A DNA stretch of 41,959 bases from Basidiobolus meristosporus CBS 931.73. Taxonomy: Eukaryota; Fungi; Basidiobolomycota. The stretch covers positions 1 to 41,959 of the forward strand of contig MCFE01000725.1 in the NCBI GenBank assembly GCA_002104905.1, read 5' to 3'. Every line of letters starts with the position of its first letter. Positions within the stretch are counted from its first letter, which is position 1. The position numbers and the translations under genes were made by a program. Below, piece after piece: positions 11,302 through 41,959 of the stretch. The notes below the pieces were generated by a model. That model did no database searches, was not told the origin of the DNA, and worked only from the letters and a program-made list of their open reading frames with translations.

Positions 11302-12387
11302 TGTTGTAAGAGTCTTGGAGATATTGGAAGTGATTTGAGGGGACAAGTAGATTAGACTTGTTCTGTTTGATAGTGCCACATTGAGGCATGAGTGCCAAAT
11401 GATGCCATAGTGTGCCAGAGAGGCCAAGTGAGCCTCTACCTGGCCACAGTGTGTGAAACATAGCTCTGCATCTTCATGCAAAGCAGCCCCTGTGTTTCAC
11501 CCATTGTGCTGGAGAAAATCCATTTTTTGCCCTTTTTTTTTGGATCAATGTTGTGCAGGATGTGTTAGAGCACAAGCAGATTGAACATATGCATCTGGTA
11601 CTCAATACCAATGGTACTCTGAATCTAGCTCCTGTAGCTTGTATCATGTCACAAAAATGAACGGCACTATCTTGGTGCACTGGTACTATCTGGCACTATA
11701 TTTAAATATTAGCCCTAAAGTAAGATCTGTACAAAGCACTTATAGTGCCAGATAGTACCAGTGGACCAAGATAGTGCCATTCATTTTTGTGACATGATCC
11801 AAGCTACAGGAGCTAGACTCAGAGTGCCATGGGTATCAAGTACCAGATGCATATCTTCAGTTCTGCTGTGCTCTGACACATCCTGAGCTACATTGATCCA
11901 CAAAAAAAGGTCAAAAAATGGATTTTCTCCTGCGCAATGGGTGAAACACAGGGGCTGCTTTACATAAAGATGCAGAGCAATGTTTCACACTCTGTGGCCA
12001 AGTATAGGCTCACTTTACCTCTCTGGCATACTATGGCATCATTTGGCACTCATGGCTCAATGTGGCACTATCCAACGGAACAAGTCTATTATGTGGCTTT
12101 CACTTAATGATTTATTGAATGAAAAAGTAGTATTTATACTTTTACCTGGTCTTGGCATTACAAACACGTAGAATAGGTTAAGGAAGGCCCCAAGAACATG
12201 TGTGAAAAGTTTGGGGCTGTGTGGACAACTTTGAGAATTTTCATGTTCTGGGTACCTGGTATTTTGGTTAAAATATTCCAAGTAAATCCCACAAGGAATT
12301 TGGTCAGTGTTCACTAGGATTTGAGGGTGATGATCTAAGTGACTAAGCTAGGTGAATATTTAGGTGGAATTACAAATTTTTTTAACA
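11302..12387 (-). mobile_element. Copia solo LTR inserted into the RT region of the same family; itself split by MITE copy E
   Basis: TGTTGTAAG...TTTAACA flanked by TATAA/TATCA (5-bp TSD, one mismatch). Removing it restores the RT frame (IRLILRIAAKY). Confidence 0.85.
11354..12087. mobile_element. Foldback MITE copy E, complete (734 bp), TSD ATT
   Basis: Arms of ~347 bp around a ~40-bp spacer. The empty site is visible in other LTR copies (ACAAGTAG-ATT-ATGTGG at ~15120 and ~40170), which defines the 3-bp TSD. Confidence 0.95.
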
Positions 12388-15300
12388 TATCAATCTGATG
12401 GAATTAAACTTGGCTACCAGTGCAAAGGTCTCAGTATAGTCAAGTCCTTTTGTTTGGGAATATCCTTTGGCCACAAGTCATGCTTTGTATCTGTCATTTG
12501 TACCATCAGCCTTGTATTTTGTCTTGAAGACCCATCTGCATCCAATTGATTTTTGGTTGATTGGTAGTTTGACTGAGTCCCAAGTTTGGTTTTCCACCAG
12601 GGCTTGATATTCCTCAGTCATTGCAGATCTCCAAAACTTTGTCAGAGGGCTATTTAGGGCCTCTTTTACAGTCTGGGGTTCATCAATATGGACTGAATAG
12701 GCATAGGCTAAGTTTGTACCCTCATTGATATAGTAATTTGGGCTATTTCTTGTCCAATTGAATCCCCAGGCATTTGATACTGAATGATCACTTCTGGGAT
12801 ATTCCTGGGCACTGATTCTGGCTAAATCATGGTTTTAGAGTCCTCTGGAGTGAAAAAATTTTTATTGTTTTGCTCTGATTCAATCCGGACAATTGGTGGA
12901 TTGGAGATCAGATTATTGTCATTGTCTGATGCCATTTTTTGTGAAAATTTTGGATTTTCATCAAAGAGCACATCCCTGAACTTGATTAGCTTCTTTGTTT
13001 CAGTATTGTAGAGTCTGTATGCTTTACTCTCATTGCAGTAGCCCAAAAATATGCATTTTATACTTTTTGGCTCAAATTTGACTGTTCCCAGGCAGTTTCT
13101 TGGCATATGCTGTACACCTAAGTATTTTTAGATGTTCTGCACTTGGTCTGTATCCATACCATGCTTCAAATGGAGTAGAATCACAAAGTATTCTGTTATA
13201 GCACCTATTTTCAAGGTTTACAGCAGTGGCAACCAATTCCGCCCAAAAATCATAGGATAATTTTTGATCATGGATCATAGATTTGGCCATATCAATTATT
13301 GATCTGTTTGCACGTTCTGCTACTCCATTTTTCTGTGTGGAGTATGGTACAGTAGTCTCTTGCTGTTTCCCATAAATTTGCAGAAGTGGATCAGGAGTTT
13401 TGAGGTATATTCTCCATCATTGTCAGAGTATATTTCCATGATTTTTTCACCAGTTTCTCTCTCCACCATGGCTTTGAACTCCCTGAGCTTAGACAGAGCT
13501 TCTTCCTCTCTCTCCATGCAGTAGACCCATGTGTATCTTGTGTAATCATCAACAAAGATGCTTGAATACTTCATCCCACCAAAGGACAAATCTTGCATAG
13601 GTCCCCTCAGATCTGGGTGAATTAGATCTAATTTTTTCTTAGTTTTGATCAGCCCAGAGCTCTTGAACAGTTGTCTGGCTTGTTTCCCATATATGCAGGC
13701 TTCACAGTGCTCCAAATTTGCTGGGGGATCAATTTTTACTCCAGAAATTAGCTGTTTTCTGATCATTTTGCGCAAATAATTAAAATGGATGTGCTCAATT
13801 CTCCTGTGCCAAAGCATTGGTGTTTCTTCATTTAAATTACTTATACTGGCTTCCAAATATGCAGGAATATAACTCAGCTTGTATAGATTCTGATCTCTGA
13901 TACCCAAAGCAATATGGGCACCATTTTGATCAGTAATCTTGCATCCAGAATTGTCAAATCTGAAACTGAGTCCTTCTGTAGTGGCCTTGCTTACAGATAG
14001 TAGGTTCTTGGCTATTGCTTGTACATAGAGTACTTCTTTGAATGTCAGTGTATGGCTTCCTTCACTGCCTCTTAGATTTACTTGGATAGCTCCTTCTCCC
14101 ACTGCATCAAGTGTTCTATTGTCACCCATGGAAACCTTCTTAATTGGAATTTCTGGATATTGGGTAAAAAGCTCTTTTTGGTGTGTTAAGTGTTGCAATG
14201 CTCTAGAGTCAATGAGCCATGTCTAAGAATCTTTGTTTGTGGTCATATTTAGTGCAGATATGAATAGTCTATCTTCAGTTGTTGCAGCATTTCCATATTC
14301 AGGCTTCTTTTGCTGATTATCTTTCTTTTTGGGACACCAGTGTGATGTGTCCTTTCCTTTTGCAGTAGTTACAAAGCAGGTTGCTGTTGCCTTTGCAGGG
14401 TCTTGAATACCTCTTTTGTTGGTTATCATTGCTTATTAAAGCACTTTCTTCTTCCTTCTTATTTGCGCTTGATTTTCTTAATTCTTTATCCAGGAGCCTT
14501 CTGTGTATGTAATTTAAGGGCAAATCCTCAGTTCTGGACTCTAGGGCTGATACAAGGCCCTGAAACCTGTCTGTCAGGCTATTCAGGATGGTAACTATCA
14601 CATCCTCATCAGTAGTAGGTACGCCCACAGATTCCATCTCATCTACCAGCAGGGTAATTCTGTCAATTGGATTTTTCATTTCTTCTCCTGGCAGCATCTT
14701 TGTAGTGAAGAATTTTTGTCTCAGATACATTTTCTTAGCAGCTGAACATGACTGGTAGGTGTCTTCTAATGCTTTCAGGCATTCATTGCTGTTTTTGCAT
14801 TTGAGTATTGAATTAGCAATTTGTTCTTAACATTAAGGCAAAGGTAGTTAAATGCACTTTGTTCTTTCTTCTGGAACTTCAAGGCTTCCTCTTCCATGCT
14901 TTTAGGAGGGCATTCTTCTCCAATGGTATTATCCCAAAGGCCTCTTTCTTGTAGCAGCATCTTCATCTTCACCTTCCACACTTGGTAGTTAGAATCATCC
15001 AGCTTTTCAGCAGAGAGATAAATTCCAGTAATAGCAGTAGTAGACTTTGCAGAGAGTGACAGCTTGGGGCTCATAGCCTGTTGTAAGAGTCTGGGAGATA
15101 TTGGAAGTGACTGGGAGTACAAGTAGATTATGTGGTTTCACTTGATGATTTATTGAATGTAAAAGTAGTATTTTTACTTTTACCTGGGCTTGGCATAACA
15201 AGCACATAGAATAGGTTAAGGAAGGTCCCAAGAATATGTGTGCAAAGTTTGGGGCTGTTTGGACAACTTTGAGAATTTTCATGTTCTGGGTAGCTGGTAC

Positions 15301-18300
15301 TTTGGTGAGAATATTGCAAGTAAATCCAAACAAGGAATTTGATCAGTATTCTCTAGGATATGAAGGTATTGATCTAGGTCACTAAGTTAGGTGAATATTT
15401 AGGTGGAAATACAGATTTTTACAACAAAAACCACATAATCTACTTGTCCTTACAATCGCTTCCAATATCTCCCAGACTCTTACAACAGGCTATGAGCCCC
15501 AAGCTGACACTTTCTGCACTGTCTACTGTTGCTATTACTGGAATTTTTCCCTCTGCTGAAAAGTTGGATGGATCTAACTATCAAGTGTGGAAGGTGAAGA
15601 TGAAGATGCTGCTACAAGAAAGAGGCCTTTGGGATATTGTCATGGGAGAAGAATGCCCTCCTAAAAATGTGGGAGAGGAAGCCTTAAGGTACTAGAAGAA
15701 AGAACAAAGTTCCTTTAACTGCATTTGCCTTCATGTCAAGGACAAATTGCTAATTCAATGCCAAGAGCAAAAATGGCAAAGAATGCCTGGAAGGCATTAG
15801 AAGACACCTACCAGTCATGTTCAGCGGCTAAGAAAATGTATCTGAGACAAAAATTCTTCACTAGAAAGATGCTGCCAGGAGAAGAAATGAATAATTTAAT
15901 TTACAAAATTACCCTGCTGGTAGATGAAGTGGAATCTGTGGGCATACCAACTACTGATGCACATGTGATAGTTACCATCTTGAATAGCCTGACAGACAAG
16001 TTCCCGGGCCTTTTATCATCCATAGAGTCCAGAACTGAGGATTTGACCTTAAATTACATATATGGAAGGCTCCTTAACAAAGAATTAAGAAAACCAAGCG
16101 CCAATAAGAAGGAATAAGCAAATGCTTTAATAAGCAATGATTACCAACAAAGGAGGTACCCAAGACCCTACAAAGGCAAAAGCAACCTGTTCTGCAACTA
16201 CCTCAAAAGGAAAGGACATACATCAAACTGGTGTCTCAAAATGAGAGATAATCAGCTAAAGAAGCCTGAATATGGAAATGCTGCAACAACTGAAGATAGA
16301 CTATTCATATCTGCACTGAATATGGCCACAAACAAGAATTCTAAGATGTGCTATATTAACTATGGAGCATCTCAACACTTTACACACCTAAAAGAGCTTT
16401 TTACCCAATATCTAGAAATTCCAATTAAGAAGGTTTCCATGGGTGACAATAGAACACTTGATGCAGTGGGAGAAGGAGCTATCCAAGTAAATCTAAGAGG
16501 CAGTGAAGGAAGCCATACACTGACCTTTGAAGTAGTACTCTATGTACAAGCAATAGCCAAGAACCTACAATCTGTAAGCAAGGCCACTGCAGAAGGACTC
16601 AGTTTCAGCTTTGACAATTCTGGATGCAAGATCACTGATCAAAATGGTGCCCATATTGCATTGGGTATAAGAGATCAGAATCTATACAAATTGACTTATA
16701 TTCCATCATATTTGGAAGCAAATATAGATAGCTGAAATGAAGAAACACCAATGCTTTGGGACAGGAGATTTGGGCACATCAATTCTGATTATTTGCGCAA
16801 AATGATCAAAGAACAACTAATTTCTGGAGCAAAAATTGCTCCCCCAGCTAGTTTGGAGTAATGTGAAGCCTGTATATATGGGAAACAAGCCAGAATACTG
16901 TTCAAGTGCTCTGGGCTGATCAGAACTAAGAAAAATTAGATCACTCAGATCTGTGGGGACCTATGCAAAATTTGTCCTTTGGTGGGATGTGGTATTCAAG
17001 CACCTTTATTGATGATTATACAAGATACACATGGGTCTACTTCATGGACAGAAGGGAAGAAGCTCTGTCTAAGCTCAGGGAGCTCAAAGCCATGGTGGAG
17101 AGAGAAACTGGTGAAAAAATAAAGGAAATTTGCTCTGACAATGGTGGAGAATATACCTCAAGACTCTTCATCCACTTCTGCAAATTCATGGGATAAAGCA
17201 AAACACTACTATACCATACTCCACACAGCAAAATGGAGTAGCAGAATGTGCTAACAGATCAATAATTGATATGGCAAAATCTATGATCCATGATAAAAAA
17301 TTATCCGATGAATTTTGGGCAGAATCAGTTGCCACTGCTGTAAACCTTGAAAATAGGTGCTATAACAGAATACTTTGTGATTCTACTCCATTTGAAGCAT
17401 GGGATGGAAACAGACCAAGTGCAGAACATCTAAGAATATTTGTTTGTACAGCATATGCCAAAAATCTGCCCAGAAAGCACTCAAAACTTGAGCCAAAAAG
17501 TGAAAAATGCATATTTTTGTGCCAATGCAATGAGAGTAAAGCATACAGACTCTAAAATACCCAAGCAAAGATGCTTATCAAGTCCAAGGATGTGTTGTTT
17601 GATGAAAATTTAAAATATTCTCAAAAAACGACATCAGTTGATGATAAAGATTTGATCTTAAGTCCACCAATTGTCAGGATTGAATCAGAGCAAAACAATG
17701 GAAAATTTTTCACTCCAGAGGACTCTACACCCTTGGCTCATCCAGAATCAGTGCCCAGGAATATCCCAGAAGTGATCATTCAGTATCAAATGCCTGGAGA
17801 TCCAATTGGACAAGAAATAGCCCAAATTACTATATCACTGAGGGTACAAACTTAGCCTATGCCTATTCAGTCCATATTGATGAGCCCCAGACCCTAAAAG
17901 TGGCCCTAAATAGCCCTCAGACAAAGTTTTGGAGATCTGCTATAACTGAGGTATATCAGACCCTGATGGAAAATCAAACTTGGGGCATGGTCAAATTACC
18001 AATCAGCCAAAAATCAATTTGATGCAGATGGGTCTTTAAGACAAAATACAAGGCTGATGGTACAATTGAAAGATACAAAGCATGACTTATGGCCAAAAAA
18101 TACTCTCAAACAAAAGGACATGACTATACTGAGATCTTTGCACCGGTAGCCAAGTTTATTTCTATCAGATCAATATTGGCTATTGTTATGAATAGACACA
18201 AGGCAGGAGGAAAAGCTAGGCCCAGCAGGAAAGGACTTAGGTGTGGACCATCAAGGCAAGGCTGTTTATTCAAGACCTGTGTTTATCAGACTGAGGAATA

Positions 18301-19513
18301 CTTAAGGGGGGATAGGACTATATATACTTTTTGGCAATATGGATGCAAACAGATATTGGCTAATACTGATGGGGTTCTGGGGTGAGGCACAGCAGCAGTG
18401 CTGGGTATAATAATGTAGAAGGCAAGGCACTGTGACAGGATGGGTAAATGGATTGGGTCACTGGATCATATGACCTGGTATTTCCATATATGGTACTGGA
18501 CTATGAAAAATACAATGGGAAGCTTCAATGGAATGTTCCATTGTGTAACAATGGTTTGGAATGGTCAGAAACTTTCTGGAAGGTGGTAGAAGGTTCCAGA
18601 AGGAATCTCTTAGAAATTGAGCTAGGAAGCTGAAACTTGGCATGGGTGTTCATGGTTGTCATGAGATCTTGGCTCTATTCTCCTCTTCCAGGCAAAGCTC
18701 TGTTTCCCGGTGTGGTGGTGTATAAGTCCAGAGGGCAAAATACGGCTAACACTTCTCAAGTGTGAATGTGTGTGGGGTGTTCACTGGGTGCAATAACCTC
18801 TGGCAAAAGCTTGCTAGGAATACTGGGTCTTTTGTCTAATCTAATGTGATGGGGGATAAAGCCTCAAGCTGGTCAAGGGAAAACTATTGAACTACAATCC
18901 CCAACTTAGTTGGCGTCTTAACAAAAGTTTATAATGGCTTTGATGTCATTTGAGATGACAATGTACTAAAGCTTCCAAAGTCAAAACAACTGTAAACTCC
19001 ACCAACAGGGACTTGATAAGAATGCAGCTTTGACCAATAGTTACAAAGACTGAAAAGTATCTTTGCCTGTACAAGAACAAACTTGGGAAAACAAACAAAT
19101 ATAATAAAATATACCTACTCTGAGTATTCCTCACAAGTAGTGCCTCCAAGGTCAGTTGGCTGTCAGCACGGTTTCCTGGGAGTGTCGTCAGGTCTGAGTC
19201 AGAAAATAGTGGTAATAGGTAGCGGTGATCTCACTAATCAATAAGTCGGAATATTGGAAGAGGGATGATTTATTTTAAGGGATAGCCTCCCTTATATACT
19301 TTTTTGCTGCTCAAATTCTTGCTAGAAAATAGACTTGTTCCGTTGGATAGTGCCACATAGTGCCAGCCGGTTTATAGTGCCGGATCAATCTGGCACTCTA
19401 CGGCACCATCTGGCACTATAATTTCTACCATGATGCCAGTGGTATGATACAGTTACTGGTAATTTTACTCAATCTTACTTATGTTGCTCAGAATAGTGCT
19501 TTCCTTGCTTTAT

Positions 19514-20398
19514 TTACTCTTCATAATGCTCCAGACAGATTTCTCTCAGTGGATGTCTTCTTGTATGAACATACTGTGCATTGATAAGTATCTTAACTAC
19601 TTTACCTATTCTGCTGTTTTCTCCTATATATGACTTTCCTCTGCATTTACCTGCCAATATGCTGAATCTCTTCAGATATCCAAATGTGTGCTCTACCCTT
19701 ACTCTGAAATGATTAAATATCTCATTGTAGAGCTTCTGCTTCCTGCTAAGCACACCATTCCTTGGCTTCCTATAAGCTGTAATACATCCTAATCTCTGAC
19801 AATCCTCTCCTATATAGGCCAAGTCAGCCATACATTTCTCCCCTCTACTGAATTCAGGATGATTCTCTACCCAGAGTGCTTTGTCATGCCTACTTCCAGC
19901 AAATGGCCCACTAAACCAGATGATGTTACCCTCAATGTCAGACAGTGCTTGAAACTTCACACAGTGTGCCTTGTACTTGCCAGAATAAAAGTGCCTCTGC
20001 CCTCTAGAAGGTCTGTTAATCCTCACTGGGAAGGTATCCAAAATACTCCTGATATGGAACCTGTTGCTGAACACTCTGGGATATGGAAGTCTATTGGAGC
20101 TTCTGAACCTAGTATTCCAAGCTTGCTCTAAGTCATTCATACCCTCTGCAAGGTGGTTCTCCATTGCTGTCAGCTGGGAATGAAAGCTTCTAGGACTTTT
20201 GTTGCCATGGATGGTGGGATGAAACCTTGTAGGGCAATAGTTCTTGTAATAGCAGAAAAGCTTAACAAGAGATCTCCTTGAGTAGATTGGGGTTGATGGT
20301 CCACAGTACTTGGAATAGATCTCCTCCAGTGTGTCAAAAGGAAATCCAGTGGTAGTGATGGGATTGATGAGAAAAGACCATTCAGATGAGTAAGTCAT
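19514..20398 (-). CDS. DDE transposase (DDE_Tnp_4 / IS5-Harbinger-like), 294 aa, apparently intact
   Basis: Motifs ILDTF, YSGKYKAHCVKFQ, G.RHD, ADLAY and RVRVEHTFGYLKRF carry the D-D-E triad. An HTH-like N-terminus precedes them. Confidence 0.92.
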   Translation of the reverse strand: MTYSSEWSFLINPITTTGFPFDTLEEIYSKYCGPSTPIYSRRSLVKLFCYYKNYCPTRFHPTIHGNKSPRSFHSQLTAMENHLAEGMNDLEQAWNTRFRSSNRLPYPRVFSNRFHIRSILDTFPVRINRPSRGQRHFYSGKYKAHCVKFQALSDIEGNIIWFSGPFAGSRHDKALWVENHPEFSRGEKCMADLAYIGEDCQRLGCITAYRKPRNGVLSRKQKLYNEIFNHFRVRVEHTFGYLKRFSILAGKCRGKSYIGENSRIGKVVKILINAQYVHTRRHPLREICLEHYEE

Positions 20399-20757
20399 AT
20401 TAAAATTGATGGATGATTGTATGGAGGCGGTATGAATCGATTCGGCGCGATCTGCAATATTTATCTGATTTTTTACACATTATGGTTAAATCTCCATCAA
20501 TTGCCATGTATCCCATCATTATGTCGCAAAAATCATCCGCAAACAATGCCTTGGTACTTTTATTGATGCTTTAATCATAGGTCTATAATCAAAAAGGAAA
20601 TCTGCGATTGATGTGATCTGATCCGTGTCAACGCGATCCAAGATGCATCATGCATAATATATGGAAAATTCAACAATCACATTAGTTTTCATATATATTT
20701 CATATAAGACCAGGTTGATGCCAATATACTGCTGTATAAGTATCCAAATCCGTTGCT

Positions 20758-22029
20758 ATGGTCCCCATACCAAGCCTCAACTCATCTTTAGTACAACCCA
20801 GACAAAACCCATCCCCCAGCTCACAAGCGCGGTCCGGACCGGAAAAGTTGATGTCGGATCCGTTCGAGTTCTTGCCAAATGATTTTAGTATGGCCCAAGT
20901 GTCTATGATGAGCCTTCATACAGATATTTGGGCACTACTGATTAATCTAGCAGAAATAGATACCTCAGAGAGTCGACAAAGATGGAAGAATTTGAGTAGA
21001 AAGCTGTGGCATGAGTTCTACATCAAGATGCCAGCCTATGTATGTAAAAAGATATATAACAAGACAAGTATTGAAATCAAGAATGAGCTGAGAGCGAGGG
21101 GATTTGACGAGGAAGCCGCGCGGGAACAATTTTGCGCGCAATTTGCACAGTACGGGCCGGACACGTCCGTTCTTGCCTCAACTTTGTGAACCAAAGAGAT
21201 TTTGAATGAGTTTTTGCCTCAAATGACTAATGTACTACGTGATATATTAGTAGAGCTAAGTGGCTTCCGAGAGCAATATACACAGGACTCATCCAGGCAA
21301 CAGCTCCAAAGTATCAGACAGAGGGTAAGTGAATACCTTGAGGAATCAGATGGTGAGCTTCAGGAGGAAGAATACAGACCGCAAGCAACATTGTCCAGAT
21401 TGCGCCAGCACGCCTCGCTGGATTCCCTACCATCTCTTGCAACCACAGCACGCCGGCGCACATCAGTCCAGAGTACGCCAACACCCTTTACCAGAACGCC
21501 CTGCGTCAAGTCAATGCGCATTGAGTCAACGCGCGTCGGGTCAACGCACACGCTTCAGAGCAAAACTACCAGAACTCGCCAAACTGCTCATTTAGACACA
21601 AGTCCATTGGAGCGGACCAAGTTGCGTCAACATACGGCATCACATTGAACTCAGCCAAGGGCCATCTCAACGCGTCAAGGCGCGCCTGCGCGTGCCGTTT
21701 TGCCTGACCATCAGCAAGTTACTTCTGGTGAACTGACTGATGATGACCAACATGAAGTGACTCAACCACCGGAGCCCTTGGCAAGTAAAAGAACGCGTCA
21801 GCGCGTGGCACTACAGGCCGGTTCAGTTGGTTCAGTTGGTTTAGTCGGAGCAATTCAGCACGGCCAAGCTGCAGCATCGCACTCATCAACTAGGAGGCAA
21901 AATACTGACTACAAATACACAAGTAGCCAAGATGATAGTCAGCCAGGAAGTAGTATAGGTGTGCAAAGTGAGTCACTACCAAATGCTTCAGTAGTAATCC
22001 CTGTGAGAAAAAAACCCAGGAGAAGATGA
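20758..22029 (+). pseudogene. Transposon ORF2, putative Myb/SANT(MADF)-like DNA-binding partner; ~423 codons with two in-frame TGA
   Basis: Track ORFs 20758, 21202 and 21700 share one frame and are separated only by TGA at 21187-21189 and 21646-21648. Carries an RQRWKNLSRK helix motif and a C-terminal NLS-like PVRKKPRRR. The domain call is inferred. Confidence 0.75.
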
Positions 22030-23234
22030 TGCGATCGCTTTGAATTGCTCACATTTGTAATGATCCCGACAACCCTTTTTTTTTGCGATCCGAATCAAGC
22101 CATTGCAAATCAGTGATCATCAAATTTTTGATATAAGTAATATCAAGGTTGTCTCACATTTGAGACAGAACCCCTATAAATAAACACCCTGCATATATAT
22201 ACGTCATCTGTAATACCAGTGCAGCTATTGGATCTGTTTTGCACCTACACAATCGCTTGCGTGCTAGCTATGACACCTTGCTCAATCACTAGGATCAGGG
22301 ATTTACTTGCTCAATGGGCAAAATGGGATATTTGATGGCGAATCAGGTAGCTTTTTCAGTAGTCAATGAGCCAATTGGGGGCTGCCAGCTTCAGGATACT
22401 TTTGGACCAATTAACCACTGAGATACCGTCCAATTGGAGTGAGGGTAACCAAAATGGTAAGTATCAGTATAGTTTATAGTGTGATACATATTTATTTCCA
22501 TTTACATTAAAGAAACATATCCAAATACCGGATTTTACCTGCCATTATAGCGGTATCCGATCGCGCACGTGATGCGAGCATTACAAGTTGGCGCGATCAT
22601 CCGCGCCAACCTCATTGTGTCAGATTGTGCCATAGTGTGCAAGATCGTCCCGCATAGTGCGAAATCGTCCAAGAACAATCCTGCCTTCTGGTAGCTATAA
22701 CATCGCGCCCGATCATTCTTAGCAACCGCGGATTGCGCCGCGCGCCCTGGCACGGTACGATGGAACAAGTCTAATACTTTCCGGAAGTTTCCAGAAGGTA
22801 GTAGACAACCAATCATGTCTTTGTGTACTAAAAATAGCGCAAATTCATGGCGGATTGTTCCATGAGACATAGTAGCACCTAGCCAATCAGGTAGTGGTAA
22901 TATGAAACCTCTGTGTCATGTGGTTGCCTCTTATGGTAGTGAGATGGGGGGTTATGAAACCAAGATGGTCACGTGACATGGGCACTGTTGGGGTACTTGC
23001 CTTATAAGGTAACTATCTTATCTTGGCATCTTGGCAAGGAATAAGAATAGCTTGTGCATTGGGTTAATAGTGACAAATAGTTTGTCAGGTTGCATAGTAA
23101 TTATCACATAGACAAAAATAGGAAATATTGCAAATTTGGGATGATAATAATATAGGTGGGGTAATCCTTTTTAGGGAAGTGAACGCATAAGAATGAGCAC
23201 ATCTGCCTGTGGGTGTCACTGTGACCCCACTACA

Positions 23235-23487
23235 CCGGTGGGGCAGGTTTTGTAGGATATTGCTGGTGGAACTGGGTAACTAGTTCTTGACAATTAGAGA
23301 GATTAGTAGCTGGTTCCCATGTTTGGTCACTTGGACCATAACCAATCCAGTCTACTAAGTAGTACAGCTTTGACCAGATATACTTGGAGTCTAGAATCTG
23401 TTTAACTTCAAATTCTTGATGTTGGTCAACCTGGATGGCTTAGGGCTTTGCTTCTTGCTGATTTGGTAAGGTGTTCCTACAATACAG
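23235..23487 (-). pseudogene. Chromodomain of the family-B integrase (not in the ORF track)
   Basis: Hand translation: IQVDQHQEFEVKQILDSKYIWSKLYYLVDWIGYGPSDQTWEPATNLSNCQELVTQFHQQYPTKP. Confidence 0.9.
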
Positions 23488-24558
23488 TGTGGTGGTGTAT
23501 AGGTCCAAGGGAGAGATACGTCCAACACTTCTCAAGTGTTTTGTGTGTGGGGTGCTCACTGGGTGCAATAATCTCTGGCAAAAGCTTGCTAGGAATACTT
23601 GGGTTCTGTCTCTAATCTAATGCAAAGGGGAATAAAGCCACAAGCTTGTCAAGGGAAAACTATTGAGCTACAATCCCCAACTTAGTTGGTGTCTTAACAA
23701 AAGTATGTGCTGGGTTCAGCATTGTTTGAGATGACAATGTACTAAAGCTTCCAAAGTCAAAACAACTGTAAACTCCACCAGCAGGGACTTGATAAGAATG
23801 CAGCTGTGGTCAATAGCTACAAAGACAGAAAAGTATCTTTGCCTGTACAAGAACAAGCTTGGGAAAGAATCAAATATAATAAAAGATACCTACTCTGAGT
23901 ATTCCTCACAAGTAGTGCCTCCAAGGTCAGTTGGCTGTCAGCGCGGTTTCCTGGGAGTGTCCTGTGGTCTGGGGTTGGAAGTTCAGGTAGCAGCAGGTAG
24001 CAGTGATCACACTAATCAGCAAGTTGGTATATTGATAAAAGGGATGATGATTTATTGTTGAGGGATAGCCTCCCTTATATACTTTTCTCACTGGCCAAGT
24101 GATTACTAATCATGGTATTCCAGAAGGTTCTGGATAGCAATAGAAATCTTAATGACATCAGAATAACCTAAGAATGTTCCAAGTAGGTACTAGAAGGTTC
24201 TAAGAGGCACAGCACATCCAACCAATCAGAAATTTGTATTCTGAAACCTGTGTAGCAAAGGGATACCATATATGGTATGGAAATGGTAGGGATGGTGACA
24301 CGGGTTGATCATATGTCATGGGTACTGGCGCAAGTACTTGCCTAATATATAAGCACTTATAGCTAGTAATCTTACATAGAGTGAGGGGTAACTTATGCAA
24401 TAAGGTAAGCAGGTGTGATAGTCAACCCGCTTATGGGATAGTACTGATTGGGTAAGACAAATGGCATAAAACTAAAATAAGTTTAGTAGAGATATAGGGA
24501 AGTAGAATATAAGGGAATGAGTACATCTGTCAGTGGGTGTCACTGTCACCCCACTACA
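23488..24558. mobile_element. Family-C solo LTR copy 2 (1071 bp)
   Basis: TGTGGTGG...CCACTACA termini. It interrupts the integrase between HVSLLEP and the chromodomain linker. Flanks are ACAG/ATGG. Confidence 0.88.
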
Positions 24559-28470: not shown

Positions 28471-30544
28471 GGTCAGTGTTTATCAGACTGAGGGATACTT
28501 AAGGGGGGATAGGACTATATATACTTTTTGGCTATACTGATGCCAAGAGATATTAGCTAATACTAATGGGGTTATGGGGTGAGTCACAGTAGCAGTGCTG
28601 GGTATAATAATGTAGAAGGCAAGGCACTGAGACAGGATGGGGAAATGGATTAGATCACCTGATCCTGTGACTAAGTCATGTGACCTGGTACTTTCATATA
28701 TGTTACTAGACTATGAAAAATACAATGGGAAGTTTTTATGGAATGTTCCATTGTGAAACAATGGTTTGGAATGGTCAGGAACTTTCTGGAAGGTGGTAGA
28801 AGGTTCCAGAAGGAATCTCTTAGAAATTGAGCTAGGAAGCTGAAACTTGGCATGGGTGTTCATGGTTGTCATGTGATCATGACAGCTATTGCAGCCAAAT
28901 ATAAGTTTTTTATTCATCAAATGGATGTAAAAACTACATTTTGGAATGGAGAACTTGATGTGGATATGTATATGGACCCGCCAGATGGGTTTGTTGACCA
29001 AGATAGCCCCCATTTGGTCCGCAAGCTTAAAAAGTCACTATATGGTCTCAAACAATCACCGAGAGCCTGGAATTGCAAGATTGATTCTTATTTGGAATCT
29101 TTGAGTTTCAAAAGGAGTAATGCTGACTATAGTATATACTAAAAGCCATATAGAGCAAATCCAGTTCTGTTAGCTCTATATGTGGATGATCTTATTATAG
29201 CCGCCAATAATCTAGCAACATTGGAAGAGACAAAATCCAGCCTGTCTAGGGAGTTCAAGATGTCAGATCTAGGAGAACTCAGTTATTGCTGAGGGATTAA
29301 GTTCTCTATTGACAGAAGTACCCAGACTATTACCCTATGCCAGTCCAAGTATATACAAGATATACTGAAGAAGTACCAAATGGAAGACTGTAAACCAGCA
29401 GCTACCCCAATGGAGACAAACCCTAACTTGGTCAAAACTCAACCTAATCAAGAGAGCTTGGTGCCATCTGAAAGCCCTGACTCTACTTATCAATCAATGG
29501 CCGGCAGTCTGATGTATATCATGCTTGGAACATGTCCAGATATCTCATATTCAGTGTGAGTGGTCAGCCAACATAATTAGAACTATGGATCTGATCATAT
29601 TGCAGCAGTTAAGTGGAATTTCAGATACCTAAAAGGAACTGCTGATATCTGCTTAAGATACACCTATAAGGATTCAGAACAGGATCTTGTAGGATACTCT
29701 GATGCTGATTGGGGACAAAATTTGGAAGCCAGAAGATCCACCACAGGATACACCTTTCAATACTGTAAAGGAGCAATTTCATGGAATTCAAGAAAGCAAC
29801 CAACTGTAGCACTTTCCACCACAGAGGCAGAGTACATGGCAGCCTGTGAGGCTACAAAAGAAGCAATGTGGTTAAGAAAGCTGTTTACAGATTTAGGCCT
29901 ATGTCAAAAAATGCCTATTACTTTATTTCAAGATAATCCAGGATGTATACAGCTAGGTAAAAATTCAACTTTTCATGCCAGAACTAAGCACATAGATATT
30001 AGACATCATTTCATACGTGAAGCTATAGAGAATAACTTAGTTAGCTTAGTTTACTGTCCTACAGATGAAATGATTGCAGACATATTTACCAAACCATTAG
30101 CTAGAGACAAGTCTGAATATCATAGGTCAAAATTAGGACTAGTCAGTATGAACATTTAGCTGAGTGGGAGTGTTGTAAAAGTTTGTAATCCCACCTGAAT
30201 ATTCACCTAACTTAGTCACTTAGATCATTACCCTCAAATCCTAGAGAATACTGACCAAATTCCTTGTCGGGATTTACTTCGAATATTTTCACCAAAATAC
30301 CAGGTACCCAGAACATGAAAATTCTCAAAGTTGTCCAAACAGCCCCAAACTTTGCACACATGTTTTTGGGAACTTCCTTAACCTATTCTACATGCTTGTA
30401 ATGCCAAGAACATGTAAAAGTATAAATACCACTTTTACATTCAATAAATCATTAAGTGAAAACCACCTAATCTACTTGTCCTCCCAATCACTTCCAATAT
30501 CTGCAAGACTCATACAACACTTTTTAGCATAGGGAGGAGTTCTA

Positions 30545-30880: not shown

Positions 30881-33678
30881 GGTAGTATGCTTCCGGGATC
30901 AGGGAGTGAGAAGGAAGGCTGCGAATCTTTCAGCAGCAATTTAGGAATCTTTAAGGTGAATGATTTTGCCCTACGGTCCATGCTCAGCTAAGCTCCCCAG
31001 ACAACATCAGTCAGTGTGTAGAACAACCAGAGGGGCCAGCAGGCTCCATTCATGGCAAAAAAAATCTTGGATGATTGTAAACACCAGTGGATTGATTGAT
31101 CTCCTACAGATGGTGAAATGCGATGAAATCTCACCAGGAATTTGTAAACAAAAAATCCGAATGGTAGCTTAGTTCAGGTACGGACCATCATCCCACCCAT
31201 GTTTAGCACATCAGAGGGGGCAAAAATGTGGCCTGATTGTTCGCATGATGCGATGCAACTGTTCTGATCCATGGCAACCCTTATTGTCCATCCAACACTT
31301 CATAAAATCCGAAAGTAACTTCGGATTAGCTCCGATGGATAACCAGTGGAGCGGTAGAGCCAACATTCCCTAGGACCCCACCCCCGATTAGCAATATGTC
31401 GTGATTTTGCCCCGGGCTCAGGAAAGGGCGGGAAGACAATGGTAGGGTCTGTGGTGCTGTGGGTGTGGGTGTGGGTGGGATTCGCTCAACACCGAAGAAG
31501 TATTTTCGAGAATGGCGGCGGCCAGCAGGAGGAGTCCACCGACATTGTTGGCTGCCGGTGCTTTTCCGTTCACAATTCCCGTCACTTGAACCATTCCGAC
31601 GCCATAAGGAGTGATCGTATGAGCATGTGTACGGATTCTAGAGCCCCAAAACATCCCACTAAATCCCTTCATTTATGCATGCCAATCATCCCTTTGGATT
31701 TCCTCATCGGTGCGCGGTTCAGTTCCGAGGCTAGCTAGCCATCGGTACTGCCGCACCCCAGGAGCAGCCCCAAATGGCTCTGTGGCAATCCAGGATGGTA
31801 CTCATGCCCAACCACTTCTATCGCTCAAGGGGTTCCGTTCTTGCATGAACACGACGCATTCCCTCCAACCGGGCTGACAACAAACTTTTACATCTACGCA
31901 GCCACGGATTCCTCGATCCAGCGTAACGCACCTATCCGTTGGCCTTTGGTACTACCCTGGGCCTTCAACTTGCGAACAACATCTCCATAGGCACTTAGAT
32001 GAGCTGAGCCCATGGGCCGGCTACGTTTCTTATCGAATTCAGTCCACTGAGGATCCATTCCACGTGGGAATCCGATTGGTGTGCAGCCTTGAGATCCCCC
32101 AAATTTCTTCCCAACCTCCAGGGTCGAGCCTACCATGTCGATAGCGACTCGTCAACCGTGTGGCCTCGTTGACCCCTGTCCAAATCGGGAACGAGAACCG
32201 ACTCGAAGATAAGATTTCGACGATTTCCCTAAGCTGTCCTGAAGCCATCGAGCCTGCCCCCCCAACCCGCCGAAAACTGTGGGTGCAGGTAACCCCAGAG
32301 AAATATGGAAGATAGTGCCCAGGCAACTCTTGGCTCAGCGCCATGTGCGTGCCATGCGATCGAAATCTTACAACAAAGAAGGTGTCGGCGGGATCAGCCC
32401 CGCGGTGGTTGGACACCATGTCCCCCGGACAGCGCGCTGTGCTGGTGCTGGTAAAACAGGAGCAAAGAGTCACACCCTGGGATGGAGGAAGGATCGGGGA
32501 GACGCGCAACTCTAAACATGTACATTGGTGCGCCATTTATCGCTACATGATCCCACCCAAGGCAAGATGGCACCAGAGATCCCCGCCTCCGGTCCATCGT
32601 TCCGTCCGGATTTGGACTGCGGGCCGGGCGATGTGATTGGATGGGCTAATTTGCGTTAAGTGTGATGGAGAAAGCATCCCCTCTAGCCATGCTACGGTGC
32701 TCCAACATGGTCCGGTGCCCACCAGAACACGGTGTGCGACCCTCCCGGCTGGCTGGTAGACACCCTCGCAGCAGAGCCACGCCCCTATACCGGCACCCGG
32801 CAATCGAGGCACGAACCTAACGCTCCTTGTCGCACTTTACCACACAACCGACCCAAGTCGGATGTTGATCCAAGTCACAGAACGGTTGACATGCGGGCCA
32901 CAAACGCGGCCGGCCAATCAGCGTGGCCCGGTGGATTCCAATCTTGGATTGGATTAATAATCGTCAAGCTCAGATAACTCCTACCCGGTAGACCATATAC
33001 CAACACGGACTGGCCAATGTCGTCGGTGCGAGGGATCCATATCGAGCCGGCAGATGCATCTCCCACCTGTCTAGAATACACCATATGAAAAGAACCTTGC
33101 TCCTGCTATCTGGATGCCCATCAATGCCTCCGAGGGAATCCCATTAGCCTCGGCTCTGGCCAATGAGCTTGCGGTCCTGGATGGAGGGACCGCATTGGAT
33201 GCGAGCGCAGAGGGCCAGCGGTGGAAAATTCTTTGGAGCCCGCGCAGGGAGCATGATTTTCCGCCACACCACTGGATCAACCCAACTCCCGGGTAAAGGT
33301 GGACCCAGGCACAGATTCCTGATCCACGATATAAAGTTTCCAAACCAACCACACTCGCCCAATATGTACTCGGTGGGATACCTTTTCGCAGGTAATTGAG
33401 GTGTGCGGTGAAGCAACTTTCCATACCGAGCCTTCCACGACAAATATGGATGTGGCTAGGCCATATTTGAGCAGGTGGATGGGGAGATTGCTCATTCCTG
33501 GTTAAGCCAGATGCCCCCTTTGGCGGTCGTAGATGATGCGCTCACCCAGTCCATGCAAACCGTAAATCGTGGTCGACTGATACATCAGATCGAAGCGGGC
33601 GTTTTCGCAGCTTGGCCTTCCAGGCCTTGCCCTAGAAGGGGGAATCCCTTAGCTGGCCCGTTTCGAGCTCCTCCAACA

Positions 33679-33684
33679 TATAAA
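33679..33684 (+). promoter_or_regulatory. Possible TATA box of the HPP gene
   Basis: CATATAAAT lies ~55 bp upstream of the ATG at 33734. Confidence 0.4.
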
Positions 33685-33733
33685 TGGACGGGTGCTGCTT
33701 CCAGGATGGGAGCAATTCGAACCATTCCACATC

Positions 33734-34565
33734 ATGGGTTTTTTCGGCACCTACATCGGCAAGCTAAAGAAATATGAGAGGGTGGCGTTCCCTCCCATGC
33801 CGCCGTACTCGCACCTTTTCTCCTCGTGGGCGGCCACCTTCACCGGCATCGCCATCACCGGCCTGTTGACCTGGAACGCCAAGATCTTCAGCCACTTCGA
33901 CGGGGCCCCAGTGCTTATCGGCTCCTGGGGTGCTAGTTCAGTGCTGATGTATGTAGCACTGGACAGTCCTCTCGGACAGCCCTACAACGCACGTAAGAGA
34001 AGCCCGAACCTCCTTTGACTCCCCGCCTCGTTTCCCTAACCTTCTGCTTCCTGTAGTTGTCGGTGGCACCATCTCAGCGTTTGTCGGAGTCACCATCGGA
34101 AAGATCTTCAACGCCGGCTGTTCCGAGGACATGTGCTACCTGTGGCTGCAGGCTGCGCTCGCTGTGTCGCTGGCCATCGTGTGCATGATGGTCACCCGGA
34201 GCGTTCATCCCCCTGGTGCCGCCACCGCCCTGATCACGATCACCGCTGGACAGCATATTCGTGAGGTGGGGTACTTCTTCATCATCTCGCCTGTCCTCAT
34301 CGGCACCCTCATCCTGATCATAGTGGCCGTCTTGTTCGACAACGTGTTCCGGAAGTACCCAAGGTACTGGATGTACAACTGGCCCAAGAGCACCAAGGAG
34401 CTCATCCTACCGGCCCAGACCCCCAAGAAGCCCCAGGAAACCCAGGTCGCAATGGTCGAAGGGCCCGTTCCCACCGCTTCCGACCTGAGCGCCCAGCTGG
34501 AAGCAGCCCATCAGAGAATCCAGGAACTGGAAGCCAAGCTCACCGCACTCGAGGGCCCTGCGTAG
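33734..34565 (+). CDS. HPP-family transmembrane protein, 255 aa; exons 33734-33992 and 34057-34565
   Basis: GTAAGA...CCCTAAC...TAG intron (33993-34056) joins the frames. Motifs LIGSWGASSVL, DSPLGQPYN(ALVGG) and HPPGAATAL, with several hydrophobic helices. Confidence 0.92.
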
Positions 34566-37500
34566 ATGCCAGGACTCCCGGAGCAGCCAGACAACCCCCG
34601 TCAACCGATTTCTCCCATTACATCATCCGGCGGGTGGATTCCCATCCCCGGGTCTTAGATTCCCATAGCCATAGATTCAACTTGTTGAGAAATCCCCATC
34701 ATACCCGTATCATATACCTTATCTATTTAATGATTTAATTGGTGTGTTCTATATATAAACCTCGGTCCACCATCAAGAGGGTTGGCGTATCAGCGACGTG
34801 TTTTGTTGTGCACCTGCCTATCATGGGGGTGGAAGCAGTCCCCTCAGGATCACCGACGGGTTGCGATCACAGGGAGAACGCTGTCCAACCAGGCCACGGA
34901 GCGTTGGCTCACTGCATGCTCCCAATGACAGCGCGTATTTGCTGGTCGTCAGCACCGTCTGTGTGGAGCCCACCACGGATGGGCAGGATTTCTGCAAAGC
35001 CGGTGAAGTGCGTTGGGGCTTGGGGCCCACTGATCCCCGGCATGCTGCAGTCAGGGTCGGCAATGCCGTTGGACCAGGATTGGCGCCGCTGGGGGTGTCA
35101 GCAGCGGTAACCACGGTGAGCTCGACGTCGAGGTTGGAGAAATGGTGTGCATGTGTACGCTTCTCCAGCCGCCATCGCAGGAAACTTCTTTGTTGACTTT
35201 AGCGGGAATCGCCCCATTCCCTTGTGGATACAGAAATAGCATGGCCAGCTCTGGACTGCCACAGGGCAAGCATCATAAGGTTGCTTCCGGTCTTGGGACA
35301 TACCGAAGAGGCAAATGAACGACGATTGGTGTGGTCGAAAGGAGAAAGTTTCAGTCGACCATTAGTCCAATGCGGTAATGGTCAGTAGAGATCTGGATGG
35401 ACCAGAATCTAGCTCGGAATCACTGATATTACTTATAGAAGATTGAGTATTGCCACTTTCGGTCAATCCGATTTTAAGCACTCTCCAGCAACCAATGGAC
35501 ACCCCATGAATACCCCGAATAGCCAGCCATCTGCAGTCGGATTGGCAGGCAGAGGGATTTGTGGAGATTTTCAGCAACTATGGCTCAAGCTAGTCGATGA
35601 ATAAGACCCGTTCATTCCACCCCCTACGACTTGTCTACAGCAGAGGATGCTGTCCATGGAAGCACAGCAACCGGCATTCCAGATCCGCTCAGGTGCTGTT
35701 TTCCCTGGCTTCTGGGGAATCGGTTCCTCTTTTAGATGGCACATGCCCCGACTGAATGGATCGCCGGTGCGCACCTGCGTCTACACGCTTTTATTTGGCC
35801 ATAGCTTCATCCCTTACTGGCGCCATCTACTCGTACGGCTGTTCCCAAATACCGAGCAGGAGATGGGATTGGTGTCACACACGCTTGGGTGCCATTCTCG
35901 AGCCCGCTAACTGCAACTAGCGCTGGGCCCTCCGTCACACGTCGGCGGACTCGCAAGATTTGCATTTGCCCCTCCGCCTGCCTCGATGACTATCTGGGGG
36001 GATCACACGTTTGGCACACATATTACAGCGTCTACTCAGGACGAACGCGTGTTGCGCCTTGTCTTGTCGACCGCAACCAACTGACCCAACCAACCTCGTG
36101 AAGCTATTCCGGAGGATCCCGAATGGCCCCCTGCCATGCTGCATGCAAGGTTTGGATACAAACATCGAAGATTACGATCTTTTCCTTGATTTCACGGCCC
36201 CGTCACTGAATCCGGTGTCAACCACCCGGCCGCCCAGGGATTGGTGAGGATAGCATCATTGGCTCTACATCAGGGCTTGAGATGATCGTGTGTCACCATA
36301 GGTCGTGCTTAGGTTGAACTTCCGCTGGCCCTTAAGGGAGATCCGATCTCCCCTAGTCGGGATCTGGTTGATGGGATTTGTCACTCTACTTCTGGTTAAA
36401 TCCGATCCCCCCTATCAGTGGAAACCAGGCTTCCGCCTCTAACTGGTCTCGTGATTGAGTTTGCCCTCGACACGCTTCCTATGTTTGTGCTTATAGTTGT
36501 GAGAATTTGAAGGCCCACCCAGTTCCCGGCTATATCACGTGACGTGGTACCGGTGATCTCCCACCAAGCTGGACGACATAGGATGCATGCACTCCAGACG
36601 CTTTTCCCTAGCATCCGTGCCATAGTTCTGCGGGTACTACCCAAAGCCCCCCTACAACGGGAACGGGGTCCAAGTACATGCATGCCGCCGTGACCACTAA
36701 AGAGTGCTGTTGCAAGGAAGGTCACTTGCCGATTTGGGCCAAATGCACCGAGGTGATCAGAGTGCAAGCACCGCCGATTCCAATCCCAAATTAGTCCAAC
36801 GATTTCGCGTCATATTTGGCGGATTGCCCTGAGGGTTATTTCTAAACATATTTTTGATAATCCATCCGAAGCACTCTGAGCTAGTCTCAAGATGTACATA
36901 CGTTATTCTGAAAAGGTTTTATATGGAAGGATGCGAACCAGTAGCTACTCTGGCACAAGATACTCCAGCTTCGTTGAGATCGGTCTCATCGCATTCCTGC
37001 GGATTCCCAGCCAAGTTGCCATGTTTGTTGTCGGCATTGCGCCAATCAGTTGCTCAAATGGGAATGCGCTGTTCCATTCACTGATCCACCGTGGCATTCC
37101 GTAACCATACCTTGCCACTGAATGCCTACTACCAGATGCCATAGGCATCAGAGTACGTTTCCAATGGGACCCCTGTGCTTTACCGCGGGCAGGGGGAGGT
37201 CGCGTGAGGGCCCATCCTGAATCCATCTGACCACAACAATGGGGCGGCGTTTAGTCTTCACCAGCAGGGAATCCCTGAAAGCCTGGTAATGAGCGGGCAG
37301 TCAGAGAGTCGAACGGCCCACGATCTTTTGTGTTAGTGTTGAGAACCCCCGGTTGGATGTGCGCAGTGTCACCACATGTTCTTCAGAAAAGCATGGGCGG
37401 TGGTTGTTTATAAACATATCCAGAGAGAGATGGCGGAGACATGGGATGCTGCTGGTAGAGAGGGAATTTTTACCCGAGGTGGTCGACTATGTCCTGTAGA

Positions 37501-38829
37501 ATTCTATAGAATGTTGGATTATCTTGCCACAAGATTGGAACCCGGGATTCGTCCTGAACCAATCGGCACTCAGGGATTTGCCCTCGATGCGCGAGCATAA
37601 CTGCTGAAAGATCAATCATCAACTAGGTTTAGGATCGACATTGTGCAGGGGATTTGGAAAATTGGATTCACTCAGCACTCCTAGACGACAATGGCCCTGA
37701 CCGGATATGTGTGTGGGCTTTTATTCGTGAATTATGCTGTATACGGAACTATCCACAGGTTAATATGCCACCGCATCCTATCCGATTCAATCCAGAATAC
37801 TCTGCCTGGTTGCGCTTCATCTACTGCAGACTGGAATTCTACTTTCTACCAATTTGCATTCTACTAAACCAAAGCCAACCTTGGTTACGAGTTAGCTCCG
37901 GGCGCTCGATGTGTCATCATAAAGCAAATCCTTCAATATAGTATCACTTGACGTCCTTGCTTCTCGCCTTGTTTATCGCCAGCCCACTGATGGAACTCCA
38001 ATATACAAACCAGATCCGCCTTCACCATAGCAATCGCCGCTGAAGCTTAAAATGCTTGCAGGGATGCATGCTCCAGAGATACGACCGCCTGCCTTCCCAG
38101 ATGCAAGAGAGACCAAACCAGTAACTTGGCTTGTATAAGCGATGGTAACTCTTGCCGAGATAGATGTCCTTAGATCTTCAAGGCTCAGTGGTGATCGGAT
38201 ACCATTAGCACAACGGATTCCCAAATAAACTAAAACTCCGTGTGGGCACTTTCCCTACTCTCGATCTCTCACCAATTGCTATTGACTTCAACATGACTGG
38301 GCTAAATCTTGACCACTAAAATGCACGTGTAAGTCTCGTTGCTTGGTGGAGCACACATATCCCCAACTCTATCAATCCACTGTGACGACCAGTATCCATA
38401 CTTCCATATACTTTACCAATGGCTGTTTTCTCCGTCAAAGCTTGCACCTTCCACGCGTGGGGTACGCTCGGATGGCGCCGGAACGATCAATTTTCTCGCA
38501 CAGTATTAGTAGCGACAATATGCCTGCTGCACCAACTACGGTGGCATTTTCGTTATTCCCACAACATGATTCGCTCCTTAATTGTTAAGACCGATCACCG
38601 GCTCAGGCATCTGGTTGATCAAAGTTGTCCCAATGTTGAATAGCATAGTCTGATAATTACCAAAATTCAATTTCGCAGTAAGCTGTGTTTTAATTTGCAT
38701 TTAATCGTGATATAATAGGCTCCCCTCTTCCTGTTGCCTGATTAGCTGCACTTTTGATCTACCATCATTCACTACAAATATATTAGATGGCACCTTGGCC
38801 AGCTTTTTATTTTGCCTGTGACAGTCAAA

Positions 38830-39680
38830 CAAACTAGGTGTATGGTGCTACAAGAAAGTGATCTTTGAGATATTGTTACAGGAGAAGAAAGCCCTCCTAA
38901 AGGTTCAGAAGAAAGTACAAAGTGCCTTTAACTGCATCTACCTTAATGTTGAAGACAAATTACTGATTTAATGCTTAAGAGCACAGATGGCAACAAATGC
39001 CTGGAAGACATTAGCAGACACCTACCAGTCATGCTCAGCTGCCAATAAATGTATGGTGAGAGTATTTCAAGTAAATCCTGCCAAGGAGTTTGGTCAGTAT
39101 TCTCTAAGATTTATAGGTAATGATCTGAGTGACCAAGTAGGTAAATATTCCGGTGGTATTACAGATTCTTGTATCACTGCCACTTGACTAAATGCTCTGA
39201 CTGAGAAGTTCTTGCTGAAAGAATCTTGGAGATATTGGAAGTGATTAGAAGAATAGATAGATTATGTGGTTTTCATTCAATGATTTATTGGATGTAGAAG
39301 TAGTGTTTATACTTTTACATGGTTTGGGCAGAGCAAACACATAAAATCGATCAAGGAAGGTCCCAAGTGTTGTAAGAATATGTGATTCCACCTAAATACT
39401 AGCCTGGCTTAGTCACTTAGATCATTACCTAATATTCTTAGAGAGTACTGACCAAATTCCTTGCTGGGATTTACTTAGAATATATTGAACAGAATATCAG
39501 ATACCCATAGCATGAAAATTCTCAGAGTTATCCAAACAGCCCCAAACTTTGCACATATGATCTTGGGACCTTCCTAAACCTATACTTTGTGTATTTTGCT
39601 AAGACCATGTAAAAGTATAAATGCTACATTTAGATTCAGTAAATCATTATGTGAAAACCACCTATACTCCAACAGCACCT
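38830..39680. mobile_element. Scrambled copia gag and LTR remnants in both orientations
   Basis: 38830-39045 resembles gag at 15600-15835. LTR pieces lie at ~39050-39175, ~39215-39368 (reverse) and 39369-~39665 (forward, starting TGTTGTAAG). Confidence 0.75.
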
Positions 39681-41745: not shown

Positions 41746-41959
41746 TTAGGGTTAGGGTTAGGGTTAGGGTTAGGGTTAGGGTTAGGGTTAGGGTTAGGGT
41801 TAGGGTTAGGGTTAGGGTTAGGGTTAGGGTTAGGGTTAGGGTTAGGGTTAGGGTTAGGTTAGGGTTAGGGTTAGGTTAGGGTTAGGGTTAGGGTTAGGGT
41901 TAGGGTTAGGGTTAGGGTTAGGGTTAGGGTTAGGGTTAGGGTTAGGGTTAGGTTAGGGT
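41746..41959 (+). repeat. Telomeric (TTAGGG)n array, ~35 units
   Basis: Uninterrupted TTAGGG to the end of the window, with three distal TTAGG variants. Confidence 0.98.

Follow-up and report, generated by a model that had tools for sequence, protein, structure and literature searches.

Why does an intact transposase gene hold not a single CpG dinucleotide when the other half of the same transposon is rich in them? This question is raised by contig MCFE01000725.1 of Basidiobolus meristosporus CBS 931.73, whose positions 1 to 41,959 (hereafter the window) were analyzed as one stretch. Within an old retroelement, inside a subtelomeric graveyard of transposable elements (TEs), lies a young, structurally complete copy of a multi-copy PHIS cut-and-paste transposon of the Pangu/Harbinger2 type. 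An initial annotation of this DNA proposed that the catalytic gene had been recoded over time into a form that CpG methylation and deamination can neither silence nor mutate, while the partner gene stays vulnerable. The analysis described herein favors another reading over such adaptive recoding, namely a mutation-selection equilibrium under CpG hypermutation, plus a CpG-island-like module in the other half of the element. We place about as much belief as doubt in this explanation.

The mobile unit spans 19331-22772 (3442 bp) and is flanked by an AAT target duplication on both sides. The joint expected of an empty site, from 19327 directly to 22773, is present in contigs from four sequencing runs, which represent paralogous copies of the retroelement hit by the transposon. 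Both genes therefore belong to one mobile unit, and the CpG-bearing second open reading frame (ORF2) and right end are part of the same insertion as the transposase, as the initial annotation had assumed. The two ends share 11 identical nucleotides (AGACTTGTTCC), with partial matches beyond. A chance origin of the 26-nt inverted repeat was considered and dismissed, the empty-site joint showing that it is a real terminal inverted repeat (TIR). The AGACTTGTTCC terminus occurs six further times in the window, at the ends of MITEs (miniature inverted-repeat transposable elements) or of fragments, and A-N-T precedes every one of the eight family termini in the window. The transposase is read leftwards and the second frame rightwards, both from a shared 359-bp divergent intergenic region.

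No CG dinucleotide is found between positions 19401 and 20428, a gap of 1027 bp. For 19403-20427, 43 CpGs would be expected from base composition and 46 from the density in the rest of the element. The gap contains the whole transposase gene, whose product matches DDE_Tnp_4 (PF13359) over residues 120-271 (E 2.3e-23). The D-D-E triad is intact, and D121, D192 and E236 are invariant across the aligned relatives. All 28 Arg codons are AGR (16 AGA and 12 AGG, no CGN). At codon boundaries, pyrimidine-ending codons that precede a codon starting with G end in C in 0/25 cases, against 65/131 before other codons (65 C : 66 T; Fisher 5.6e-7), and synonymous codon shuffling of the gene would give 11.8 +/- 2.5 CpGs. 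The initial annotation was thus accurate on the absence of CpG over roughly 1,025 bp, on the exclusive use of AGA and AGG for about 28 Arg residues, and on the intact frame of 294 aa with its DDE motifs. An exact-protein look-up of this transposase returned no record. The segment-wise ratio of observed to expected CpG (o/e), a calculation that the same annotation had suggested, is 0 in the gap, 1.11 in the intergenic region, 0.78 in ORF2 and 1.02 in the right arm, and the rest of the insertion outside the gap holds 110 CpGs. Within the window, the gap ranks only fifth among the longest CpG-free stretches, and at TE-background density the probability of finding no CpG in it is ~0.1. A CpG-free kilobase is ordinary relative to the surrounding TE DNA; the contrast is significant only inside the element.

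The CpG-free state is not peculiar to this copy. The only close relative in protein collections is P0001, a 294-aa protein on Logan contig L001 (62% amino acid and 65% nucleotide identity), which comes from a separate sequencing run (SRR949943). Its gene has one CpG in 885 coding bases (o/e 0.03), and its Arg codons are 25 AGR and one CGC. The flanks of this gene hold 5 CpGs in 187 bases upstream and 4 in 178 bases downstream (o/e 0.5-1.0). The transposase of the window differs from it by a dN of 0.27-0.28 at saturated dS, so that purifying selection is evident. Arg is common to both at 21 positions, and no position shows a scar of the type R to C, W, H or Q. The initial annotation had suggested this comparison of Arg codons and dN/dS among homologs, and had held that post-insertion decay does not easily account for the pattern; the lack of scars agrees with it, and CGN-rich family copies, which it had named as evidence to the contrary, are not what L001 represents. 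A more distant homolog on metagenome contig L002 (37% identical) has a CpG o/e of 1.5 and encodes 30 of its 32 Arg residues by CGN; therefore, the protein sequence does not impose the CpG-free pattern. Its product (P0002; L002, 1-1728) carries a C-terminal extension of ~70 aa without counterpart in the Basidiobolus proteins. Among the listed places at which other copies differ from the window, the two best-supported differences in the coding sequence (19826 and 20257) create no CpG. Judged from these alignments, the CpG-free state is a family trait, long maintained under purifying selection in two lineages.

The same depletion is seen across the TE DNA of the window, which has a G+C content of 42.7% and consists of two compositional states. 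CpG o/e is 0.00-0.12 per kilobase in TE DNA (1-19.1 kb, 23-31 kb and 39-41.7 kb; 0.05-0.1 overall) and 0.7-0.86 in the host-gene block (31-39 kb) and at 20.4-23.0 kb. Equally CpG-free host genes would have told against the initial annotation, but the host genes are not CpG-free: their o/e is about 0.8, and they form a CpG-rich island (31000-39000) of 51-57% G+C between CpG-free TE blocks near the telomere. Three Copia copies (12963-15138, 15428-17600 and 40475-41746) share ~90% identity along 1.27 kb that includes both coding and non-coding DNA, and hold 3-4 CpGs each. Independent decay from a CpG-normal ancestor predicts a mixture of TG and CA at ~3/4 of roughly 45 sites; only four aligned columns contain both, and therefore the common ancestor was already CpG-poor. 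The gypsy and Copia frames use almost only AGR for Arg and avoid a C-ending codon before a G-starting one (NNC|G); the gypsy reverse transcriptase has 0 NNC|G against 70 NNT|G. The retroelements also carry some decay scars, in agreement with the initial annotation.

Depletion also extends beyond codons within the transposon itself. Between the stop codon of the transposase and the subterminal repeats lies a non-coding spacer of ~110 bp, which is CpG-free in both lineages (0 against 3.9 expected in the window and 0 against 3.3 in L001; joint P ~7.5e-4). The CpG-free zone is therefore a region and not a set of protected codons. As to the underlying process, repeat-induced point mutation of the Neurospora type, which changes CpA to TpA and raises TpA, was considered and rejected. 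The o/e values are 1.0-1.7 for TpG/CpA and 0.58-0.81 for TpA; TpA is not raised, and the depletion concerns CpG. The hallmarks of 5-methylcytosine (5mC) deamination are seen instead, with CpG depletion limited to repeats and with copies that differ from one another by C>T/G>A at CpG.

The CpG-rich half comprises the promoter, ORF2 and the right arm. In it, CGCG occurs 20 times (5.9 +/- 2.5 expected) and GATCGC seven times (1.3 expected); no such enrichment of either motif is found in the host block. The motif GATCGCGCC at about 20444-20452 precedes the ATG of the transposase by ~50 nt. It is the same in L001 as in the window, and the right arm contains it three more times. A cluster of CpGs at 22529-22759 in the right arm contains the GATCGCGC/ATCGCGCC motif three times as well as a 22-bp tandem repeat with an ATAGTGC core. 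Among the left subterminal repeats, the CpGs are partly conserved with L001, which also keeps the motifs CCGGCAC and AACGGAA. Outside the CGCG/GATCGC neighborhoods, the right half still has a CpG o/e of about 0.55, and the proposal that CpGs survive only in these motifs was rejected as insufficient by itself.

ORF2 is clearly coding: two stops interrupt its frame, whereas the other frames hold 23 and 31 and shuffled sequences 21.5. Both stops, at 21187 and 21646, are TGA, one C>T step from CGA, and intron models that would remove them yielded no convincing splice sites of frame-preserving length. No homolog was found in Pfam, by word search or in the atlas, and a search against 1.84 billion representatives gave a single match, a bacterial secreted carbohydrate-binding repeat protein with a Por tail, which is treated as a spurious chance hit. 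A single-sequence AF2 model of the N-terminal part is helical at low confidence (pLDDT 55). Capture of a host gene was rejected on two grounds. The G+C content at third codon positions (GC3) is TE-like (0.44, compared with 0.72-0.81 in host genes), and the CpGs are evenly spread over the three codon positions. The idea that the constrained parts of the proteins are the CpG-free parts was likewise rejected, as the well-predicted helical stretch of ORF2 is CpG-rich. Degenerate tandem units with a period of 15 (GTCAACGC / ACGCGTCA) occur within ORF2 at 21509-21547 and 21660-21810, with ACGCGT present twice; these may serve as binding sites or have arisen by slippage.

In other copies, the CpGs of this half are lost by C>T/G>A decay after insertion. 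When contigs of run X1 are compared with this stretch, 165 of the 265 variable places (62%) show a C>T or G>A change, and the listed ones coincide with CpGs of this copy in the promoter, ORF2 and right arm. The old family termini in the window, at MITE ends, likewise have TG or CA where the TIR of this copy has CG. The partner gene is thus vulnerable, as the initial annotation claimed: the listed cases show these CpGs disappearing from other copies, and ORF2 of this copy carries two TGA stops.

These results can be brought together under the equilibrium explanation. TE DNA in this genome would lose CpG very fast, most likely by deamination of 5mC, and the TE lineages that persist would have settled into a CpG-depleted equilibrium. 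Where purifying selection acts on a gene, the changes that survive would be silent or conservative ones only (CGR to AGR, NNC|G to NNT|G, NCG to NCA). The outcome would be an intact gene without CpG, whose immunity to further CpG decay would be a by-product and not necessarily the reason for its state. With their host-like CpG levels, the promoter, ORF2 and right arm would be kept off this equilibrium as a CpG-island-like, cis-acting and regulatory module, with many of its CpGs in clustered CGCG/GATCGC; it would be unmethylated or selected in still-moving copies and would decay after silencing of a copy. By analogy with two-gene PHIS elements, the transposase and the ORF2 protein, both produced from the divergent promoter, would recognize the AGACTTGTTCC ends and the ATAGTGCC subterminal repeats and insert at ANT. 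The equilibrium covers four results, namely those on the transposase, the non-coding spacer, the Copia lineage and the codon usage of the retroelements. From these patterns we infer that methylation is responsible and that the CpG-rich module is protected or selected. B. meristosporus encodes CDCA7F, which almost always co-occurs with HELLS and DNMT1 (PMC10538959), and its presence makes a methylation machinery plausible in this species.

Several observations weigh against this explanation. The true anomaly is the CpG-rich half, since the genome strips CpG from other TEs too. Uniform mutation pressure cannot give an o/e of 0 in one half and 0.8-1.0 in the other. Contigs of organism B match the transposase at 86-87% and the 5' part of ORF2 at 81-83% identity, and both halves seem to have been long linked; halves that are long linked and yet unlike in CpG therefore need some region-specific factor. 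The o/e outside the motif neighborhoods means that motif retention explains the contrast only in part, and in the predicted structure the most confidently helical stretch of ORF2 lies in CpG-rich DNA. Furthermore, the individual differences between copies cover 40 of 929 variable places, and the family consensus is seen only indirectly.

The strongest competitor is adaptive CpG-proofing, in which lineages with a CpG-free transposase would out-survive others as their gene body is neither silenced nor frame-broken, the state being kept by lineage-level selection. We regard this as a minority possibility, although it accounts well for a CpG count that stays at 0-1 in two lineages despite saturated dS, for complete avoidance at codon boundaries next to CpG-normal DNA, and for a copy in which ORF2 is broken while the transposase is whole. 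It also has a technical precedent in the engineered CpG-free transgenes and low-CpG transposon vectors used against silencing (e.g. PMC11840574). However, the CpG-free zone extends into the non-coding spacer and therefore fits regional mutation pressure better than codon-level protection, the Copia lineage is equally depleted in coding and non-coding DNA, and the promoter of the transposase itself retains CpGs. In related PIF/Harbinger elements with two genes, both proteins are typically required. A protected transposase by itself would probably fail to maintain mobility, and ORF2, probably needed too, is unprotected. General TE theory adds that a transposase acts in trans, so that selection on each copy's own gene is weak. 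What stands of the recoding proposed by the initial annotation is a long-maintained CpG-free family trait, seen also in L001; nothing shows that it is adaptive, and the Copia copies, the spacer and the AGR usage of the retroelements tell against its being special to the catalytic gene. A two-part counter-defense against a CpG-directed genome defense would combine a transposase kept CpG-free by lineage selection, and so out of reach of methylation and CpG mutation, with the CGCG/GATCGC-rich module of promoter, ORF2 and right arm, which would either hold the element unmethylated like a CpG island or use its own methylation and decay as a clock that determines which copies remain mobile; we consider this joint claim doubtful.

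A mosaic origin is improbable. In this view, recombination, gap repair or horizontal transfer would have fused an old, long-resident, CpG-depleted transposase module with a younger ORF2/right-arm module that has had no time to lose its CpGs. The sharp boundary between the two compositions, the lack of a credible ORF2 homolog among the 1.84 billion representatives and the absence of a conserved motif in Pangu second ORFs (PMC4482050) are in line with such a junction. The organism-B contigs span both halves at similar identity, though, the GATCGCGC motif is conserved and links promoter and right arm, and the TE-like GC3 and lack of codon periodicity of the CpGs in ORF2 make recent host-gene capture unlikely. 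Least credible of all, to the point of being negligible, is that single-copy decay after insertion, chance or a sequencing artefact at methylated CpG produced the pattern. CpG-free kilobases are common in the surrounding TE DNA, but the frame is intact and free of decay scars, and the same insertion retains its CpGs elsewhere. Two lineages that hold 0-1 CpG under purifying selection rule out the decay of a single copy. A basecalling artefact was rejected in particular, as AGR codons cannot be produced by C>T errors and the SRR949943 contig has the same pattern in a relative.

Table 1. Coordinates of the transposon, its parts and its left flank within the window.
Feature	Position	Strand	Remarks
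Left target-site duplication, AAT	19328..19330	.	Empty-site joint; flank read
Left terminal inverted repeat, begins AGACTTGTTCC	19331..19356	+	First 11 nt match the right end when that is reverse-complemented
Left subterminal repeats, ATAGTGCC units in both orientations, 4 CpG	19331..19425	.	Block conserved with L001
Non-coding spacer 3' of transposase, CpG-free	19402..19513	-	0 CpG, 3.9 expected
DDE transposase gene, intact, 294 aa, zero CpG	19514..20398	-	
Divergent intergenic (promoter) region, 359 bp, CpG o/e 1.11	20399..20757	.	
ORF2, partner gene, ~423 codons, 58 CpG	20758..22029	+	TGA at 21187-21189 and 21646-21648
Right non-coding arm	22030..22746	.	
Right terminal inverted repeat	22747..22772	-	
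Right target-site duplication, AAT	22773..22775	.	
Left flank, old CpG-poor retroelement piece hit by the transposon	18710..19327	.	Continues at 22776-23234

The surroundings of the element add further detail. The retroelement of the flank has a paralog at 23487-24086 (86.7% identity), plus a piece at 24495-24558, and the transposon is thereby bracketed by a direct retroelement repeat of 600 bp (18710-19303 and 23487-24086). A second pair of retroelement repeats is formed by 18279-18671 and 28476-28881. MITE-like or fragmentary ends of the Pangu family are found at 11354-12087 and as termini at 462, 1623, 6629 and 9050, all at A-N-T sites; the pair 11354/12087 is flanked by a matching ATT duplication. 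Positions 11-12 of the TIR vary by copy (CG, TG or CA). The host island includes a two-exon gene for a membrane protein of the HPP family (33692-34018 and 34131-34565). At the end of the window, a (TTAGGG)n telomere tract (41750-41959) directly adjoins a truncated Copia gag/pre-integrase ORF (41219-41749), as though healing of the chromosome end had taken place within the retroelement (41219-41959).

The contrast within this element would be informative under either kind of cause. Were selection responsible, a transposon would here have hardened its catalytic gene, in nature, against a host defense aimed at CpG. If it arises from regional methylation, young copies would be a sharp built-in reporter of where an early-diverging fungus methylates a mobile element and where it does not, in a part of the fungal kingdom where 5mC is poorly charted. 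Many near-identical family copies and a culturable host leave the question open to testing. Literature searches for a 5mC map or a TE study of Basidiobolus found none.

Among known systems, the closest is the Pangu group of PHIS (Han et al. 2015, PMC4482050), called Harbinger2 in Repbase (PMC12730594), which is characterized by an ANT target, TIRs of 11-40 bp starting with AG or GG, a length of ~3.5 kb and a second ORF without motif. The element described here shares the 3-bp ANT target duplication (AAT), the AG-starting TIR and the size (3442 bp), together with a DDE_Tnp_4 transposase that lacks additional domains and a second ORF of no known motif, here interrupted. It differs in its host, as the listed fungal hosts of Pangu are only ascomycetes and basidiomycetes (PMC4482050), and no CpG mosaic is described for the group. 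A profile search with the transposase alignment yielded, beyond the two close relatives, mainly IS5-like transposases of cyanobacteria and no further eukaryotic lineages. Identity with canonical PIF/Harbinger elements, which have a TWA (TAA/TTA) target and a Myb/SANT partner, was rejected on the ANT target and on an ORF2 without a Myb/SANT match in Pfam.

With respect to the mutational process, the nearest parallel is the CpG hypermutation of TEs in basidiomycetes (Horns et al. 2012, PMC3318451), along with CpG depletion driven by 5mC in general. There, too, CpG is strongly depleted in TE DNA and not in host genes, and copies differ mainly by C>T/G>A; the family-level depletion of an intact gene and the sharp stop inside the element set the present case apart. 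The literature searches found no naturally CpG-free transposase, only engineered CpG-free or low-CpG vectors. Like those transgenes, the gene described here is coding DNA without CpG that cannot be CpG-methylated; they were designed for mammalian cells, whereas here the state is natural. Mammalian LINE-1 elements have a CpG-rich promoter island in the 5' UTR and CpG-poor ORFs, and thus likewise place a CpG-rich regulatory part beside coding DNA that has lost its CpGs in a methylating genome. LINE-1 belongs to another class of elements, however, and the CpG-rich part of the Pangu copy contains an entire second gene.

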